In this document: piece by piece, positions 52,750 to 64,000 of the stretch
Position numbering within the stretch: the stretch's first letter is position 1
Layout: each line of letters starts with the position of its first letter
NCBI GenBank assembly: GCA_002104945.1
Contig: MCFH01000011.1
Coordinates: forward strand, 620,001 to 684,000
Source: Piromyces finnis finn
Lineage: Eukaryota > Fungi > Neocallimastigomycota
Direction of reading: 5' to 3'
Length of the DNA: 64,000 bases
Notes under the pieces: generated by a model
The model's database searches: none
Seen by the model: only the letters and a program-made list of their open reading frames with translations
What the model was told of the DNA's origin: nothing
Made by a program: the position numbers and the translations under genes

Positions 52750-55417
52750 TTAAAATATATTTTCCATCATTTTCATCATTTCTAAAACATCTGGAGGAAT
52801 ATTATTTTTATTTTTAATAAAGATGTCAAAGGCTTGAGTAATAGAATTATCTTCAGGATCTATTGGTGAACTATTAGCACTGTTGGAAGCAATAAATGTC
52901 ATCTTTACCTTAAAACTGACATTATCACCAACTTTCATATTATTAATATGAGAAACTTCAACATCTGAATATGAGAAATACACTAAGTAAGATTTAATTA
53001 ATTCAAAACTTTTTCCTTCATTTCGTGTATCATTTAATAATACAGAAATAACTTCATCGCTAAGTTGAATGTAACCGGAATTATTTAAAGAATCTAATTT
53101 ATAAATCTTTCCATTGTATTGAACATTATTTTGGAAAAATACTTGTTGTTTTTGATAATCTTTTTCGAAAGTTGGAGAATTAAAAAGAGATGAGGTATCG
53201 ATACCACTATTAACACTATTACCTGAATGAATAGTTGGTGATGTAATTTCTGTAGAATATTGAGTAGTTTGAGTGGGATTAATAAGGGATTGGTTTTGAG
53301 ATTGTGCTGAGGATGGTGATAAAGAGGTATTTGAAGAAATATTGAAAACACTATTAAAATTATTTAATGGATTCATAAAGGAAGGTATTTGATTTATTGT
53401 TGAACTATTGTTATTTATGTCAAGTGAAGAATGACTTGTATTGTTAATATTTAATGCTAATGGTGAGGTAACTGGTGAAGGAATATTAGGCTTGTTATTT
53501 ATTATTTCTATATATGAAAATATTAGAATATAATTATAATATATTAAAATTATTTTTTTTAGTTCGTTTGTTTGCTTTTTAGTTTAATAAATATAATTAT
53601 TTCATTAATTTTTCTTATATGTATTATATTTATCATAAAAATATAATAAATAACATATACAATATAATATATAAAATATCTATAATCTATAATATTATCA
53701 ATATTACCTGTATCTGTTGAAGTAGTAAAAGACTTTCTATTATTATCTATTGGGTAATGATTATTTTTATTTCCGTAGTTGTTGTTTTTATGTTGGCTAC
53801 CTTCATTATACATTATATTATTGTTTTTATTATTATTTATATTGGTGGTATTGATTTTGTTGTTGTATATGTTATTGTGATTATAGTGGAAATTACTATT
53901 AGATTTTCTATTAAATTTATTCTTATCCTTTTTAGTTGAGTTTTGATAATTCTTATTATAATGTTTATTATGTTTATTTTTAATATCCGTATTATTCTTG
54001 TTATTAGTATTATTATTTCTTGCACCGTTACTATTATTATTGTTGTTATTAAACTTTTTAAAGTTTCTAAATCTTTTTTTAACAATAAAGTTGGAATTAT
54101 TCTTTTTTCGGTCATTTTCAAAACGATTATATATATAATTTGCTGTCTTTTCGGAATCAAATTCTAACAAAATATAAGCTATGGAATCCATTGGTTCAAA
54201 TATGTCTTTACATAAATCTTCTGGTTTATAAAACATGTTTCTGTAATCTCTAGGATTTTCAATATAAGCAATATGAACAGAATGCTGAATAAATAAGGGC
54301 AGCATTGAGTTTTCTTTATTATTTTTTATTTAATAGTAAAATTTTATAACAGCAATGATAATAATGATGCCAATATTATTTTTTTTTAATAAATTAATAA
54401 TTAAAATATAATATAAAAAATGTATTAATAAATTATATTGTTGAATAATACACTGCTATTATCAATAGTTTATAATTAATTATGAAATATTAAATTTAAA
54501 GATTTTATAATATTTATACCTTTTGAATTTGGATTTATTCCAATATTTGTTGAATTTAAGTTAAATCCATTATTACTATGATACGATATTTCGTTAAATT
54601 CCTTTCTTTTTAATTCTTCTTCTTCTTCTAATTCTTTAAGGTAACAACGACATTGATTCAAAATATCTTGTTGCTTTTGAGTTTGAGTACTATCAATGTT
54701 TAAAGCAACCAAAGTACGTTTTGCTGTTGGCACTAAATTTTCAATAAGTTCTTCTAAAGGTAATGCGGTTCCTTGGCCCTTACGTTTAACATGAGTACGT
54801 TCTGGATTTAATTCTAATTGGTTAGAATAAGTTTCAATGGAATTTGCTAAATATTCTAAATTATTTTGGCAATATTTCGAAATATCTGAATATGCTGTCA
54901 AATGTAAAAGAGGTATATAACCATTGGTATAAGAATTAATTCTTGATAAAAATATTTTATCATGTTGAAGGTGATTTTCTGTAAAACGATCTTCAATTGC
55001 CTTTACAAGTTTTAATGATTGTTCAATTTCAGATTTTTTGGTTTGAAAAGCTGATTCATCACTTGTGGATACTACTAATTCACTCATAATATTTTTAGGA
55101 CGTTGACTTTGAATTGGTGTAGAAGAAAGAGTTGTAATATTAGTGGTATTTGAAGAAGAGATAGTAGATGATAAACTTAGTTTTTCCGCTATAGTCATTT
55201 GTGTTGAAATGGAATCTAAGGTTTGTGTTGGGCCTTGGTATATTTGATATGTAGGTGGTGCATCTGGATTTGATTTATCTTGTAGAGTATAATACGGTTG
55301 TTTTGTATGGAAGAATAATTTTTGGTGTGAATTAAATGAAGGTTGCTTTTGTAAAATCCCACTTATACGATTTTCTCTTTTGACATTATCTTTTTTATAA
55401 TAATTTCTTTTAGACAT
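52750..55417 (-). CDS. La-related RNA-binding protein: divergent La motif, RRM, N-rich linker, C-terminal cold-shock-like domain; 3 exons
   Basis: Exons 55417-54520, 54313-53708, 53507-52750 join in phase 1. La motif KLVKAIEDRFTENHLQHDKIF...NGYIPL...ELNPERTHVKRK; RRM strands KRTLVALNI and YILLEFDSEKTAN; CSD-like NGKIYKLDSLNNSGYIQ...LVYFSYSDV...MKVGDNVSFKV. Confidence 0.72.
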
Positions 55418-57366
55418 TGTGCTTTATTATATATGTGTAATTATTTAATGAAATCTTTATTAATATTTTAAAAATAATTATTATAATTTTTATATTATTT
55501 TTAGTTTAATTGTTGCAGTTATTGTAATAGCGATAGTTTTATTTATAATTAATGATCATCTGAATATATTTCTTAAAAATAACTAAACACTAATTAATCA
55601 TAAATATTAACTGGAAGATTGACTTTTTTTTTTTGATTTTATTGTTATATATGTTATTTAAAATATATAGATAAGTAATTTTATTTAGTATAAATATAAA
55701 ATTAATAAATTAACATTTTAATATAATATCTATTAAATATATTGAATTGATTTTTTTTTTTTTTTTTTTTATATATATTTATATATATTTATTTTTCTTA
55801 TTAATATTATTATTTATATAAAGATATTCGTTCAAATAAAATTTAATTAAAGGGGATTGTTTGTTATATTGTAATTTTAATTTTATAAATATAATTCACT
55901 TTATTAATAAATAATATTATTTAATATTAATTATTACCTTTTATTACTCTTTTGCTTTTCAAATAGTATAAAATTTATTTAATTTTTTTAATTTTATATT
56001 AAATAAAAAATAAAACATTAAGTCTTTATTTTAAGATTTGAGATTGATAAAATTAAATGAAATGCTAATTACTTTCATTTATATAAATTAACCTTTTACT
56101 TAATAAAATGCATTTATATTCTGAATTACTTTTAAGATACTTTTAATATCTATTAAAAAAAGCAAATGTTTATTATATTTATATTTATGTATATTTTTAT
56201 TTTTTTATAAATTTAAAATTAACGAAAAAAAAAAAAAAGGTACTTTCAAAATATTGTTTTTTGTTCTTATTTTTAATATTATTTTTTTTCTAATTTAAAT
56301 ACTTTAGTATTTAAAGTTTATATCATAATATTACAATATATTAGATTCAATTAATTATATGGAATATACAATTGATTTAATAAATAATATATGATAAATA
56401 TATTCTTTACAATAAAATAAAAAGTATGAATTATATTCTTCTTTTTCAAATAATTATGGTATAAAAAAATAAATTCTTTTAATATCTCACATATAATATT
56501 TATATTAATTATTTATCATAAAATAAAATAGTTTAGTTTATTAAAACTTATTTTTTAAATATTTATTATTTATTATTAATACTAAAAATATAAACAGCAA
56601 TATTATCATTACCACACACTTTTTTCTCTTTTAAAGTATTAATGTAGTTTTTACATATAAGTTGTTATAATATCATATGATTTTCACATTGAAAATATAA
56701 AAGACCTCTATTTATGTTACACAGATTTTCAAAAAAGTGTGTAACATGAAATGAATGAAATATAAAAGAAAAAATTAAAATGCCTTTTATTATTGGGGAA
56801 AAAAAATAAAAAAGAAAAGAAAAAATAATGAGCTTTTATAATAATGCTATAATAAAGGTAAAAGATAAAAATAATTTAGTAATAATTACTTTATGTATTA
56901 CTAGTATCCTTTAACTTTATTTATATAATTAAAAATTCATTTATAAAAAAACATACAGATGAATAAAAAAAATAATAATAAAGTTTTATAATAATTTATT
57001 ATTTAAAATAATTTTTAATAAATTTTTATGTAATGTAATAAAATGTATTATGAAATATGTAACATATAATATAAAGTGTGCTTTTAACTTCAAGGTATAT
57101 GAAAATGTTGAATGAAGATTTTTAAATGTCGATTTATTCTATAAGTATACCCAAATAAAATTTCTTGGAAAAAATAATTAATTAATTTATTAATATATAA
57201 AAATAAAAAATAAATTATAGAAATAAATTTATCAAAAAGAAGCATAATAAATTTAAAAAAAAAAAAATGAATTCACTATTACAAATACCTAACATTATAA
57301 ATTACAGTTTTCAATATAAAAGGTAACTTTGATATGAAAAAAATATTATTAATTTTATTACTATTA

Positions 57367-59216
57367 ATGAAAGTTTTATATTTTAAATCATAGTAATGTA
57401 TATTTTTAAAGCAAAATCTAATAATAAAAAATAATTATATAATTAAATGTATTATTATATGTATGTCTTTATGAAATATTAAAATATTTTTTTTAATACA
57501 TTATAATTTAAATTTAAAATGCAAAAGCTTAATTTCAAATCTTTCTCAAAAGAGAAGTGTAACAAATATTAGAGAAAGTATGTATAAATAAAAATAAATA
57601 TAAAAAAATTTAAGTTATGTTTTTACTAAATTCTTTTAATAATTAATAATAATTAAATTTATATAAAATATTAATTATAGTTCAAACACGATTAAAATCT
57701 ATACAAAATACAAAAAAGATTACAGATTCGATGAAATTAATTGCATCGAATAAAATTGAAAATGCAGAAAAATCTTTAAATGTTGCAAGGAAAATGGGAG
57801 ATTCAATCAATAGTACATATTAATTTATAAATATAATTATTGTTATTTCAATATGTTCATAATTTTTATATAATTTAAATATTATAACATTTCATTAAAG
57901 TGATATGGTATTATTAATTATTTTAAATTAACTTTTTTATACTAATATACTTAGGCTTTTTTAAAAACATAAAAACTTCAAAACAAATATATGATAGAAA
58001 TGTTATTATAGCAATTGGTTCAGATAAAGGTTTATGTGGAGGTATTAATACCTCTGTTTCCAGAGCCTTAAAATATCTTGTGAAAGAAGAAAATGGAAGA
58101 AAAAATTCTGATGAAAATAGTAATAAATCAAAAGTATTAAAAAAGTTAAAATCATCTTCTATAAATAATGACAATAATGAAGAGTCTCAGCAACATCATG
58201 TATTTATTATTGGAGAAAAAGTAAAATCTCAAGTTGCCAAAGATATTCCATCCCACATTGAAATGATATATAGTGGTATTGGTGGTAAGAAACAATCAGG
58301 GCCTTCCTTTTATGAAGTATGTTTAATATGTGATGATATTAATTATGTTATGCAAGAAAATTTATTAAACTCTGATATCAATGAAGATAATTCATATAAT
58401 GAGGTTTTTGATTCAGGATTTATTCTTTATAATAAATACATAAATTCAGTTTCATATGAAATTTCTACTATACCTATTTATTCTAGAGAAGCTATTATAA
58501 ATTCACGTAGGCAATCTAAAATTCATAATTTTAACATTTCATAATAGTTTTTTTTTTATTTTTATTTTATTTTATTTTATTTTATTTTTTGACATTTTTA
58601 TAATTTTCATTCACATATAATAATGTTAAATTAAAACCTTTATATATATATATATATATCATTTTCAAATTATTTAATTTTTTAAAATGTATATAATAAA
58701 TAGCAAATTTATTATCATATAAATATGATGAAGATATATTTGATGAGTTACAGGAATTTTCATTTGCTATCAATTTATATTTGGCACTTTGTGAAGGATA
58801 TATGTCTGAATTGAGTTCTAAAAAGTACGCTATGGAAAATTCTAGTAGAAATGCAAGTATGTTTAATTATATTTTGTTATAGTTAATTTTGCAACATGAA
58901 ACTTTTTTATAATAAATATTTTAAAGATGAATTGTTATAGAATCTAAAATATGTTTTTCATTTTTTATTTATTTTATATAATTAAATCTATATAAAAGAG
59001 GAAATAATTAATAATTTAGTTAAATCAATTAATTATTCAAGACAAACTCATATCACAAACGAATTGATTGATATTTCAACAGTAATTTGAGATATATATA
59101 ATTTAAAAAAAAAAAAAAAAAAAAATAGGATAACAAAATCATACTAATACTGTTTAATGTTTAATATATATATTTGATTCTATGATATATAGGGAGCAAA
59201 TAATTATAAAAAATAA
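57367..59216 (+). CDS. ATP3: F1-ATPase (ATP synthase) gamma subunit, divergent, with a putative organellar presequence, about 339 aa, 7 exons (the first two exons are tentative)
   Basis: Exons 57367-57392, 57528-57577, 57681-57812, 57955-58506, 58704-58856, 58999-59081, 59193-59216 total 1020 nt with all phases consistent. Gamma hallmarks: IREIQTRLKSIQNTKKITDSMKLIAS, SDKGLCGGIN, IIGEK, YNKYINSVSY, SELSSKKYAMENSSRNA and RQTHITNELIDISTGA. The ORF track shows only a fragment of this gene. Confidence 0.9.
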
Positions 59217-62200
59217 TAATTATTTGAAAATAAAAAAAAAATTAAAAATAATAACAGCAAAAAAAATCTTTTAGATGTAAAATAAAATATAATATAATTC
59301 ACAATAAATATTAACAAAATAATAAAAATAGATAATTTAGATTTACTTATTAATTTATTATTATCAATTTTATTAGAAAATAAAAAGATATATAATATAT
59401 ATATAAAGATAAAGATTTAAACAAGAAAGATAAATTTGAAAAAAAAAAATAGATTTTATATATTATTTTTTCTAAAAACTTTTAATCATTAAAAACCTTG
59501 TAAATTATAAATAATATTTCCCTAAACTGCACCTAAAATATTAATAATTCATAATGAAAATAAAGCTTTTTTAAAAATCAATAATATATATTTCAATAAT
59601 TCCTTTTTTCCTTTTTAGTTTCAAGTTGAAATGACAAAATCATAAATAAATAATCCATTAATTTATTAGGTAAATTTGGAATTTTAAATTATTAAATAAG
59701 CTACTACCAACTTTAATAATTATTAATTGATAGGAAATTTTTATTATTTTTTACTACTGTTAAAACAAAAAATTTTGGATGAAGGTGAAACAATAATATA
59801 TTAAATTAAATGAATAAAGTTTATTTAATTTAAAATATTAGGATTGATACATGTGTATTTTTACATATATTTATGTTTCAAATGAATAATTATATCATTT
59901 TAGTGTAACACAATAAATCATAAGATATTCTATTTTTATTGGAGATTTTTTTGATGGTATCAAAGTATATATTCTAAAGTCTGAATCATTATAAATAAAT
60001 GATATATAAAATGGAAATTGTTTTTCTCTGTTTTTTTATATTTAAATAATTATAAATAAATTATATTTTAATATAATTTATTTAATAGAAAATATATTAT
60101 TATACAAATGAAAGAGCAATTACCATCTAATTGAAATAGTATACTTATCTTCTTTTTTCTTTATTTTTTTTGAATGGAAATTTTGTGGTTTTTTTTTTTA
60201 CATTAATACTAAAATGGAAATTTAAAAGAAAGAAATTTTAAACTTTAATCTATATATATTTAATTTTGTAACATGGTATGTTTCCCATGATGAAAAAAAA
60301 TTTTTTTAATAATAATTTTAAAAAAAAAAATTCCTTTTATATACATATTAAATAATATTTTTAAAATATTTCATTCAGCAAATAAAAAATACTAAAGAAA
60401 ATTGGCACTTTTAAAACGTTGAAAGTAATAATAATTTTATCAATTAAGTATTATTATTTTAATATTAATTTACATTTCTATTATAGGTGAGATTTATTAA
60501 AAATAATAAAATAATAATATTATTATATTATTTTTAAATTCGTAAGAAATGCATAACTTTTAAAATTGTTAAGGAATACAAATAGCATAATTTTACACAA
60601 TTTTTAAATTAAAAAATACCAATAAATATTATCACGCAATATGTTTTTCTGTCACTTTTTAAACTTTATGCTAATTAAATAAGATCTATTGGTAGTTATT
60701 TTATTTAAAAAAAAAAGTAAATATAAAAAAAAAAGGAATTTCATAATTATAAATAAATTCTTTCTTTTTAGTAAATAAAAAGGTGGTCTACCGCAAAATT
60801 TACCATAGTTTAAACTATATTTTTCTTCAATATTTAAAGAAAATTTTATAATTAATCAATATTTATTAATTAAATTACTTTACAACAACTGGTGAAGATC
60901 AATTCAAGAAGAAAAAAAAAGGATTTATAAAGGAATATAAATATATAAATAAATAAATTCTAATTTTATCATTTATATAAAATATATATAATCTAAAATA
61001 TATTATTTCAACATATAATATAAAAAAATAATTTGTATATAGTCGTAGAATTACTATACAAACTATATTGATAAAATATATTAAATTTCAATATATATAA
61101 AAAAAAGTTAATGTATCACTTATATAATTTATTCTTATTAATAATATTTAATAAATATATTGGTTTAATATATAATAATAAATAAGTTATATATTAAAAT
61201 ATAAACCTATAGTATTATTTTATAAATCTCCTTTTGTAAATTAATATTATCATTTATCATTTAATATAAATTCTCCTTTCATTTATTACAATATAAAAAA
61301 AAAGGAATAAATAATTAGGATAAAGAATTTAAATAATATAGAAAATGAATGTAAAATAGAACTTAACTGGTGATAAATGAACTTTATAAACTATAATTCT
61401 TATAAAGTAACAAATTATTAATGCATTTTTTTAGTGACTAAAATAAATGTTTTATATATATTATTCTTTAAAAAAAATAAATATATAATATTAATTATTT
61501 TATTTATAGCTTTAATAATAGTACATTAATAAGATTTAGAATATTAAAATAATATATTAAATTTAAATGTTTTAGTTTTTCATTTGGGTTAAAATGTTTC
61601 ATATATTTATAATATATTAAATTACATATAATTCCATATAAATTATATTTATATATACTATAATGTATTACTAATTTAAATTTTCAAATTAAGATTTATT
61701 ATATTATTTAAATTTCATTTGTTAATTCAAAAATAATAAATAACTTTTAAATATATTATATATAATTAAAGTTTGTTTCTTTACAAACTTTATTGTTAAT
61801 AAATATATTATAGATTTAAATCTTATTTATTATTTATTTATATTGATTTATCATAAGATTATTAAATTTAAAACATTAATAAAATCCTAAAACTCGTTTT
61901 TTCTATTTATCTTACTATTATTAATAAATAAATTTAATTAATAAAGTTTCAGATTTGTCTAACCAATAAAAGTTATAAATTTCAATAATATTTTTTTTTA
62001 TGACTAAATGATATACTAGTTAGAATAATTTTATTATAAATAGAGTTTACCATAAAATAGAAAAAAATGTTTCAAATATAAATAGAATAATTTTTCTCTG
62101 TTTTTACTTATTATTTAATTTTTTTATTTTCCTTTTTATTTAAAAAATCAAAATAAAATAAATTATATTTATACTGCTTACTGGATAAGCTAGAATAGAA

Positions 62201-62437: not shown

Positions 62438-64000
62438 ATGGTTTTCAAGAAGATTATTTCTGTTGCTATGATGTCTTTCATAGGAAAGGCCGTAGCTGAC
62501 TGCTCAAGTTCTTTCAAAAATCAAGGTTATTCCTGTTGTAAGGGTTGCTCAGTTGTCGACACTGATGCAACTGGTGACTGGGGTGTTGAAAACGGCCAAT
62601 GGTGTGGTATCGATACCCAAGCTTGGTAAGTTTTAGTTAATAAATATCAATATTATTATTTAATAGTATATAAAATATCTAAATATTATGTTATTAAATT
62701 TAATAAATAAAATAATATATGAAATAAATAGTAAGCAACAAAATTCTTCAGTAAGTATATAAATATTATAAAAACTATTTATATTTAAACTATATATAAA
62801 ATTATTATAATATTAATATTAATAATATATTTATTATGATAAAAAGTGCTGGGCCGCTGCTGAAGGTTATGCTTGTTGTAGCTCAGGAACTCCAGTTACT
62901 CTTACTGATAGCAAGGGTAAGTGGGGTATTGAAAACGGTCAATGGTGTGGTATAGTTAACGAACCAGTTTCTGACCCATCATGTTGGGCCTCTTCTGAAG
63001 GTTACAAATGCTGTCAAAACACTTGTGATGCTATTTACTCTGAAGGTAGCAAGAAGTGGGGTTTCGAAAATGGTGACTGGTGTGGTATTGTTGATAACAG
63101 ATGCATTAGTGTCCCAACTAACATCCCAACTCAAAGTCAACCATCTCAACCAACTGGTAATGCTGGTGCTGATGGTTCTTGTACTAAGGGTCCATGCACT
63201 CAAACTGCTCCAGGTTGGACTCCAGGTAATGATTCAGTCTTACCAGGTTATCTCTCAACCAAGGGTAAGTACATCGTTGATGAAAAGGGCCGTAAAGTTA
63301 TTTTAGGTGGTCTCTCATGGTTCGGTGGTGAAACTACTAACCTTTCTCCACACGGTTTATGGGCTAACTCTTTAGAAAACTTCATTAAGATCGTTAAGGA
63401 TCACGGTTACAATCACCTTCGTTACCCATGGACTAACGAAATGTTATTCCCAGGTGCCGAAACTCAATCTGTTGACCAAGTTAACAACCCAGATCTTGCT
63501 AACCTCAGTCCATTAGAAGTTATGGATGCCGTTATTGATGCTTGTGGTAAGGCCGGTTTAAAGGTTTACCTTGATCGTCACAGACCACTTTCTGGTGGAC
63601 AAAGTGAATTATGGTACATTCCAGAAGTTCCAGAAGAACAATGGATTGAAGACTGGCAATTCCTTGCTAAGCGTTACAAGGGTAACCCAACCGTTATTGG
63701 TGCTGATCTTCACAACGAACCACACAGTTCTGCCTGCTGGGGTTGTGGTGAAATCGAACGTGATTGGAGACTTGCTGCTGAAAGATGTGGTAACGCTATT
63801 CACGAAGTTAACCCAGACTGGCTTATTATTGTTGAAGGTAACGATCACTATGGTGAAGAAGGTTGGCAAAAGGGTGAATCATACTGGTGGGGTGGTATGT
63901 TAAAGGGAGCTAAGGAATTCCCAGTTAGATTAAACGTTCCAAATAAGCTTGTTTACTCCGCTCACGATTATGATAAGAATGTCCACATGCAAGATTGGTT
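62438..64000 (+). CDS. Secreted cellulosomal endoglucanase: signal peptide, three fungal dockerins (CBM10-like NCDD), P/T/Q linker and GH5 domain (subfamily 1-like); truncated by the window end
   Basis: Exons 62438-62625, 62732-62750 (19-nt microexon) and 62847 to beyond 64000. Three CC...WGxENGxWCGI dockerin motifs. GH5 motifs [24 protein letters not shown] (acid/base Glu codon 63717-63719), WLIIVEG, WWGG and KLVYSAHDY resemble bacterial E1/EngXCA-type GH5_1 enzymes. Confidence 0.93.

Follow-up and report, generated by a model that had tools for sequence, protein, structure and literature searches.

The Piromyces finnis window, by which we mean the whole stretch of 64,000 nucleotides that was analysed (G+C 19%), contains an intact, seven-exon gene encoding the gamma subunit of F1-ATPase, and we consider the identity of this gene, its intactness and the purifying selection acting on it to be virtually certain. 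Our best explanation of the whole, in which we place somewhat less than even confidence, is that gamma may serve as the rotor of a hydrogenosomal F1 that works as an ATP hydrolase and energises the membrane. The gene matters for the question of how hydrogenosomes that lack a genome maintain the membrane potential needed for protein import, and for a puzzle set out in PMC8561657, the retention by gut fungi of exactly the F1 half of the ATP synthase. For gamma, the present analysis removes the option of a decaying relic and identifies the rotor helices as the most constrained part of the protein; the corrected P. finnis gene model, with its true first and last exons, is needed for anyone wishing to express or tag the subunit.

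The gene is already annotated at NCBI under a gamma-subunit name. Its exon 4 is 100% identical to the 350-aa entry P0003, 'F1 complex, gamma subunit of ATPase [Piromyces finnis]', for which PF00231 is recorded, and the corrected protein (349 aa, versus 339 in the preliminary description) agrees with that entry at every position from residue 1 to 342, diverging only past residue 342. Translated singly, exons 3-6 match PF00231 (ATP synthase gamma) in colinear order, which, together with the identity of exon 4 to the public entry, bears out the original recognition of this locus as an intact gamma-subunit gene. The exons and associated features are collected in Table 1.

Table 1. Exons, insertions and discarded segments of the P. 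finnis gamma gene, in positions of the window.
Feature	Positions	Strand	Remarks
Coding exon 1 (true)	57267..57322	+	ATG at 57267; holds 18 codons and 2 nt; followed by the GT donor at 57323
Exon 1 as proposed earlier (MKVLYFKSY)	57367..57392	+	Inside intron 1 (57323-57527); non-exonic
Exon 2	57528..57577	+	End of leader and start of mature protein; 50 nt
Exon 3	57681..57812	+	N-terminal rotor helix; PF00231 6-47, E 2e-9
Exon 4	57955..58506	+	Rossmann-like foot, SDKGLCG, both low-complexity insertions; PF00231 72-188, E 4e-15
Insertion 1	58089..58196	+	About residues 125-160; low-complexity; length varies between species
Insertion 2	58356..58406	+	About residues 214-230; 17-column gap in yeast gamma
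Exon 5	58704..58856	+	Start of C-terminal rotor helix; PF00231 206-252, E 4e-7; 92% identical in L020
Exon 6	58999..59081	+	C-terminal helix, RQ..ITNEL catch motif; PF00231 254-279, E 3.5e-4
Exon 7	59193..59216	+	GANNYKK and TAA stop; C-terminus shared with orthologues
Last exon of P0003 (FQVEMTKS)	59620..59645	+	Probably a mis-annotation; no orthologue ends in this way

The preliminary description had joined seven exons, free of stops and with GT..AG at all junctions, into a 339-aa protein; this architecture stands except at its 5' end, where the proposed first exon is unconserved and intronic. The true exon 1 ends in the donor AAAAG/GTAACT and joins the acceptor at 57528 in the same phase as the exon proposed earlier and, since the two candidates share both acceptor and phase, the sequence of the locus alone is unable to separate them. 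For comparison we used orthologues from Anaeromyces robustus (P0005) and Neocallimastix lanati (P0007) and two more, P0004 and P0006, all four read from cDNA contigs, together with the genomic contig of the closest relative, L020, which is 89% identical to P. finnis in exon 4. Residues 1-18 of P0003 match 57267-57322, and the N-termini of the orthologues and of the public P. finnis model alike derive from an MNS/MNT/MSS-type exon. In L020, the segment corresponding to 57255-57326 is kept at 80% identity and codes for MNSLYQ..., while the exon 2 counterpart codes for LIGNLSQKRKITSIRE. The segment 57367-57392, by contrast, has no match in L020 by blastn or tblastn and no counterpart in the orthologue proteins or cDNAs; being unconserved in L020, it sits within intron 1, and we also rejected it as an alternative first exon because it is unconserved and lacks a cDNA counterpart.

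Exon sizes tell the same story in other genera. The corrected P. finnis series of 56/50/132/x/153/83/24 nt, where x is exon 4, recurs in N. lanati: placed on the genome of that species, the cDNA falls into exons of 56, 132, 618, 153, 83 and 24 nt and leaves a gap of 50 nt at the expected exon 2. The A. robustus cDNA, when placed on its genome, likewise begins with a coding exon of 56 nt. Because in-frame stops precede the ATG in every orthologue cDNA, no part of the leader is missing. At the 3' end, the last exon of the preliminary description is upheld: the proteins read from the cDNAs of A. robustus and N. lanati end in GANNYKK, which L020 also encodes, and exon 7 matches all orthologues and L020, unlike the public model, whose final exon at 59620-59645 is unsupported and probably mis-annotated.

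By sequence, the top solved relatives of the protein are the gammas of Pichia angusta (5lqx_G, 8e-41), Yarrowia (5fl7_G) and yeast (2hld_G, 2e-36), with weaker matches to bovine gamma (about 1e-29) and to bacterial gammas (1e-18 or worse). Because the closest solved relatives are fungal mitochondrial gammas, the gene is one of mitochondrial, vertical descent, and a bacterial, horizontally acquired origin was rejected on the same ground. An AlphaFold2 model of residues 1-342 (pLDDT 77) consists of helices at 33-84 and 273-341 and an alpha/beta foot, and its top Foldseek matches are F1 gamma chains only (TM 0.76-0.84 by target), yeast F1 gamma scoring 0.80-0.84 and its chains 2wpd_G and 2hld_G 0.80-0.82 by target. 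The model is disordered at residues 1-29 (the leader), 133-156 (insertion 1, which is missing from yeast gammas) and 225-229 (insertion 2), with pLDDT <50 in the latter two segments. All five orthologues retain RLKSI, KIT, SDKGLCG and RQ..ITNEL, and the rotor-stator columns, comprising RLKSI..KIT..MK at the N-terminus and the RQ..IT.EL catch at the C-terminus, are invariant in a 39-sequence alignment that includes all the gut fungi.

Outside these motifs, the gut-fungal gammas have moved far from those of yeasts. We took as a baseline the 144 columns that are >=85% conserved in 115 other gammas, a mostly budding-yeast set in which 'conserved' is thereby over-counted: all five gut fungi retain 67 of the 144, whereas the other 77 are changed, nearly always to one replacement residue common to the five. 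Replacements shared by all five orthologues point to an old change followed by conservation. Several radical replacements fall in the C-terminal helix at yeast-invariant positions, some of which we take to be invariant in bovine gamma too; measured against the same yeast-heavy baseline, this helix is not enriched for stem-lineage changes (about 49% there versus 53% overall). The yeast gamma mgi mutation I270T (PMC4894397) offers a specific point of reference. The mgi-type substitution at this position is absent from the gut fungi, which keep the residue as I340, and the counterpart of yeast I271 is Ser in all five. Taken from the alignment, the fixed changes in gamma appear compatible with adaptation to life without Fo.

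Selection was measured by the Nei-Gojobori method (NG86) on a codon alignment in which P. finnis is represented by its corrected CDS and each of the other four orthologues by a cDNA contig. Whole-gene dN/dS is 0.12-0.21 among the five; the unsaturated pair P0004/P0006 gives 0.13 at a dS of 0.30, and P. finnis against L020, over exons 3-5, gives 0.08 (dN 0.060, dS 0.77). By region, pN/pS is lowest in the C-terminal helix (0.06), with 0.15 in the N-terminal helix and 0.10-0.21 in the foot domain; insertion 2 has 0.29, and constraint is relaxed in the leader (0.70) and in insertion 1 (0.78).

Intron-free contigs of 1.2-1.5 kb that code for exactly the orthologue proteins occur in four relatives: they come from ten runs for P0004, from a single run for A. 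robustus, from four runs as well as a JGI contig for N. lanati, and from one JGI contig for P0006. At least four relatives therefore transcribe the gamma gene and splice its transcript. The evidence for its expression in P. finnis itself is indirect: four P. finnis runs contain 21-43% of the sampled words of 57200-59700, which comes near the roughly 42% of this region that is exon, and the exact exon 2/3 junction of a spliced P. finnis transcript was not found in JGI metagenome contigs.

These results bear directly on the idea that gamma is an evolutionary relic, decaying since the loss of oxidative phosphorylation. Such decay could be read into the 77 of 144 altered columns, the two low-complexity insertions and the low expression in N. 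lanati (PMC8561657), but the alterations are fixed and identical across five orthologues, the seven-exon frame is intact in three genera, and spliced transcripts are present in many runs. The preliminary description had named a dN/dS near 1 across gut-fungal orthologues, or the lack of a transcript, as signs of a relic; the ratios are instead 0.08-0.21, and spliced transcripts are present in the four relatives. With dN/dS well under 1 and intact orthologues, a relic or pseudogene is ruled out for practical purposes, and we give this reading almost no credence.

The P. finnis protein begins with a leader of 30 aa that has three basic residues, no acidic ones and an Arg that is conserved. Ahead of the position where the aligned mature yeast protein begins, all five orthologues have 30-32 aa, and these leaders carry 3-5 Lys/Arg, 0 Asp/Glu and 13-20% Ser/Thr, versus 12-14% Asp/Glu in the remainder of the protein; the chance of 30 aa without Asp/Glu is about 0.01 per sequence. 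Arg28 is conserved within Q-[KT]-R-[SN]-[IV]-[TA], three residues before the point aligned with the yeast mature N-terminus. The presequence proposed in the preliminary description was thus partly right: LISNLSQKRSV, from exon 2, is real and the acid-free composition holds, but the first 18 residues differ. The N. lanati gamma has been assigned to the mitochondrion by DeepLoc (PMC8561657). In composition the leader is presequence-like, resembling a matrix-targeting signal, and we regard it as a putative presequence. We infer, with good though not full confidence, that gamma is targeted to the hydrogenosome.

Gut-fungal hydrogenosomes have neither a genome nor a respiratory chain, and they gain ATP by substrate-level phosphorylation and then export it. 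ATP synthase alpha, beta, gamma and delta, each of them predicted mitochondrial, are listed by Wilken et al. (2021) for six gut fungi, N. lanati among them (PMC8561657, Table 3), so that the alpha and beta partners for which the preliminary description had suggested a search are on record, along with delta, in six gut fungi. In N. lanati the F1 transcripts stand at 1-26 TPM, versus >1000 for succinyl-CoA synthetase, and the authors describe the function of the soluble subunits as unknown and their location as open (PMC8561657). The persistence of F1 genes in gut fungi without known membrane subunits is therefore already published and is not new here. A mechanism in which F1 works together with the ADP/ATP carrier has been described for trypanosomes without kinetoplast DNA (PMC13035230) and for mgi yeasts (PMC4415626), and a version that relies on the carrier only has been put forward for the hydrogenosome of a ciliate (PMC6993867). 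In the literature searched, we found no paper applying the F1 and carrier mechanism to gut fungi.

The orthologue alignment contains a near-invariant foot loop, SYKYDEDIFDELQEF, which aligns with what we take to be the c-ring-contacting loop of E. coli gamma. With the foot near-invariant among gut fungi, it must still bind some partner, and this partner could be delta alone. The strong conservation of the foot, including the presumed c-ring-contacting loop, also suits a cryptic or conventional F1Fo in which highly diverged, nuclear-encoded Fo and stator subunits have escaped homology searches, and which would pump protons with matrix ATP from substrate-level phosphorylation, or use a gradient to synthesise ATP. 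An ATP-driven proton pump would fit the energetics of an ATP-producing organelle in need of an inside-negative potential better. On the other hand, the gene for subunit a lies in the mtDNA of fungi, and an organelle that is genome-less would require nuclear genes for both a and c; the reported set is F1 only (alpha, beta, gamma, delta). Homologues of the membrane subunits, even of the well-conserved subunit c, were not found in gut-fungal genomes. JC-1 staining indicated a gradient, and Wilken et al. themselves left the cryptic-Fo option open (PMC8561657). There is also precedent among apicomplexans and ciliates, in that Fo subunits missed by homology were later found via proteomics in Toxoplasma (PMC6059495, PMC6133553) and Tetrahymena (PMC2903591). 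Weighing these points, we consider an F1Fo of this kind unlikely, and the literature leads us to lean modestly towards a real absence of Fo in gut fungi. The sequence of gamma would fit an Fo-less F1 and an F1Fo with unrecognised Fo equally well, and nothing in it decides between the two.

We return to the reading that we prefer, namely a hydrogenosomal F1 hydrolase with gamma as its rotor. The nuclear gene encodes gamma, the rotor of a mitochondrial-type F1-ATPase, with a leader of 30 residues that would direct it into the hydrogenosome for assembly with alpha, beta and delta into a working rotary F1 (alpha3-beta3-gamma-delta). Because there is no organelle genome, no respiratory chain and no known Fo or proton-motive source, this F1 would most likely run as an ATP hydrolase rather than as a synthase, and its most likely use would be in helping to keep the inner membrane energised so that proteins and metabolites can be transported. 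One possible route is through the ADP/ATP carrier and its electrogenic exchange of ATP4- for ADP3-, the mechanism of rho0 yeast and dyskinetoplastic trypanosomes.

The carrier step poses a difficulty. For a cycle of F1 and carrier to make the inside negative, ATP4- has to come in and ADP3- has to go out, and in an ATP-exporting hydrogenosome the carrier would move net negative charge out, which is the wrong direction for such a potential. Considering the export of ATP and the rarity of F1 relative to succinyl-CoA synthetase, the cycle would be workable only in states in which the organelle consumes ATP. Two side observations speak against the preferred reading as well: the F1 transcript levels of N. 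lanati are low and, to our knowledge, Trichomonas hydrogenosomes import proteins without any F1. For gut fungi we judge the F1/carrier hypothesis plausible in outline, with an energetic weakness, and a membrane-potential role of F1 together with the carrier possible but rather doubtful.

The same energetic objection to an F1/carrier cycle in an ATP-exporting organelle would favour keeping F1, or a sub-complex of it, for a role other than energising the membrane, such as control over the ratio of adenylates in the matrix, a function in structure or in assembly, or work in another compartment. This would also sit well with the very low transcript levels and with a subunit location that Wilken et al. 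called open (PMC8561657). We nonetheless hold a non-energising role to be quite improbable, as constraint in gamma is highest (pN/pS 0.06-0.15) in its rotor helices and catch residues, parts of importance to rotary catalysis, the leaders of all five orthologues have the composition of a presequence, and four F1 subunits are kept together in six species (PMC8561657).

Set beside known systems, the P. finnis protein is like fungal mitochondrial gamma (yeast ATP3; 2HLD/2WPD chain G; 5LQX chain G) in its PF00231 domain and its coiled coil with a Rossmann-like foot, and like yeast ATP3 in the motifs RLKSI, KIT, SDKGLCG and RQ..ITNEL and in having an N-terminal leader of similar length. It differs from ATP3-type gammas in being about 30-38% identical to them and in its two lineage-specific low-complexity insertions, and its host, unlike that of ATP3, lacks both an organelle genome and any reported Fo. 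Among annotated gut-fungal gammas, it is the same gene as P0003 and is 73-79% identical to those of other genera (P0005, P0007); unlike P0003, which ends in an unsupported exon, the corrected model ends in GANNYKK.

The closest functional parallels may lie in cells that have lost the organelle genome. One may ask whether gut fungi are the natural equivalent, tens of millions of years old, of petite yeasts and dyskinetoplastic trypanosomes, with an Fo-less F1 and the carrier energising the hydrogenosome; we put this forward as a speculative reading that we judge possible but rather doubtful. After loss of the organelle genome, the rotor-stator interface would have undergone a single remodelling in the stem lineage and been held unchanged since, and energising by F1 and carrier would perhaps be confined to stages or conditions in which the organelle is a net consumer of ATP. 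Hydrogenosomes export ATP, unlike the organelles of rho0 yeast and dyskinetoplastic trypanosomes, into which glycolytic ATP is imported. Unlike the yeast gamma-I270 mutants of the mgi type, P. finnis leaves I340 unchanged and has only the neighbour I271 replaced by Ser. The likenesses are that, as in rho0 (mgi) yeast and dyskinetoplastic trypanosomes, there is no organelle genome to encode subunit a, F1 has been kept and, according to the literature, an ADP/ATP carrier is present, and that gamma carries many fixed replacements in its C-terminal helix, where the mutations of mgi yeasts and trypanosomes map (PMC4415626, PMC13035230).

The last exon of the gamma gene lies at 59193-59216, where it encodes GANNYKK and the stop codon, and the final exon of P0003, the public P. 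finnis gamma protein model, is probably a mis-annotation. The FQVEMTKS terminus of that model has no counterpart in any of the orthologues or cDNAs compared.

The ENA metagenome contig L020:1-3499 carries a complete gamma gene from a species closely related to P. finnis but not itself sampled; its exon plan is identical to that of P. finnis, and exon 4 shows 89% identity. The automatic gene calls on this contig consist of exon fragments only. The gamma introns contain simple repeats (see table), and the lists of blastn matches against L020 are inflated because the intronic poly-A run cross-matches A/T runs throughout the contig. Positions 57191-57228, within the presumed 5' flank, were excluded from all later searches.

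Features in and around the gamma gene (window positions)
Feature	Position	Strand	Remarks
Part of the presumed 5' flank	57191-57228		Upstream of gamma start codon
Simple repeats in gamma introns	58546-58590, 58648-58660, 59097-59126		(ATTTT)n, (TA)n, long poly-A run
Last exon of P0003	59620-59645	+	Public P. finnis gamma model; encodes FQVEMTKS

Elsewhere in the window, three large ORFs of 208, 248, and 313 aa occupy 52750-55417 on the minus strand, and the G+C content appears to rise from ~63 kb onward. In the ORF at 62438-62629 (+), the N-terminus resembles a signal peptide, and the Cys-rich motif YSCC..C..WGVENG.WCGI comes after it. Its similarity to a fungal dockerin (CBM10) would mark the ORF as the beginning of a cellulosome-type secreted protein.
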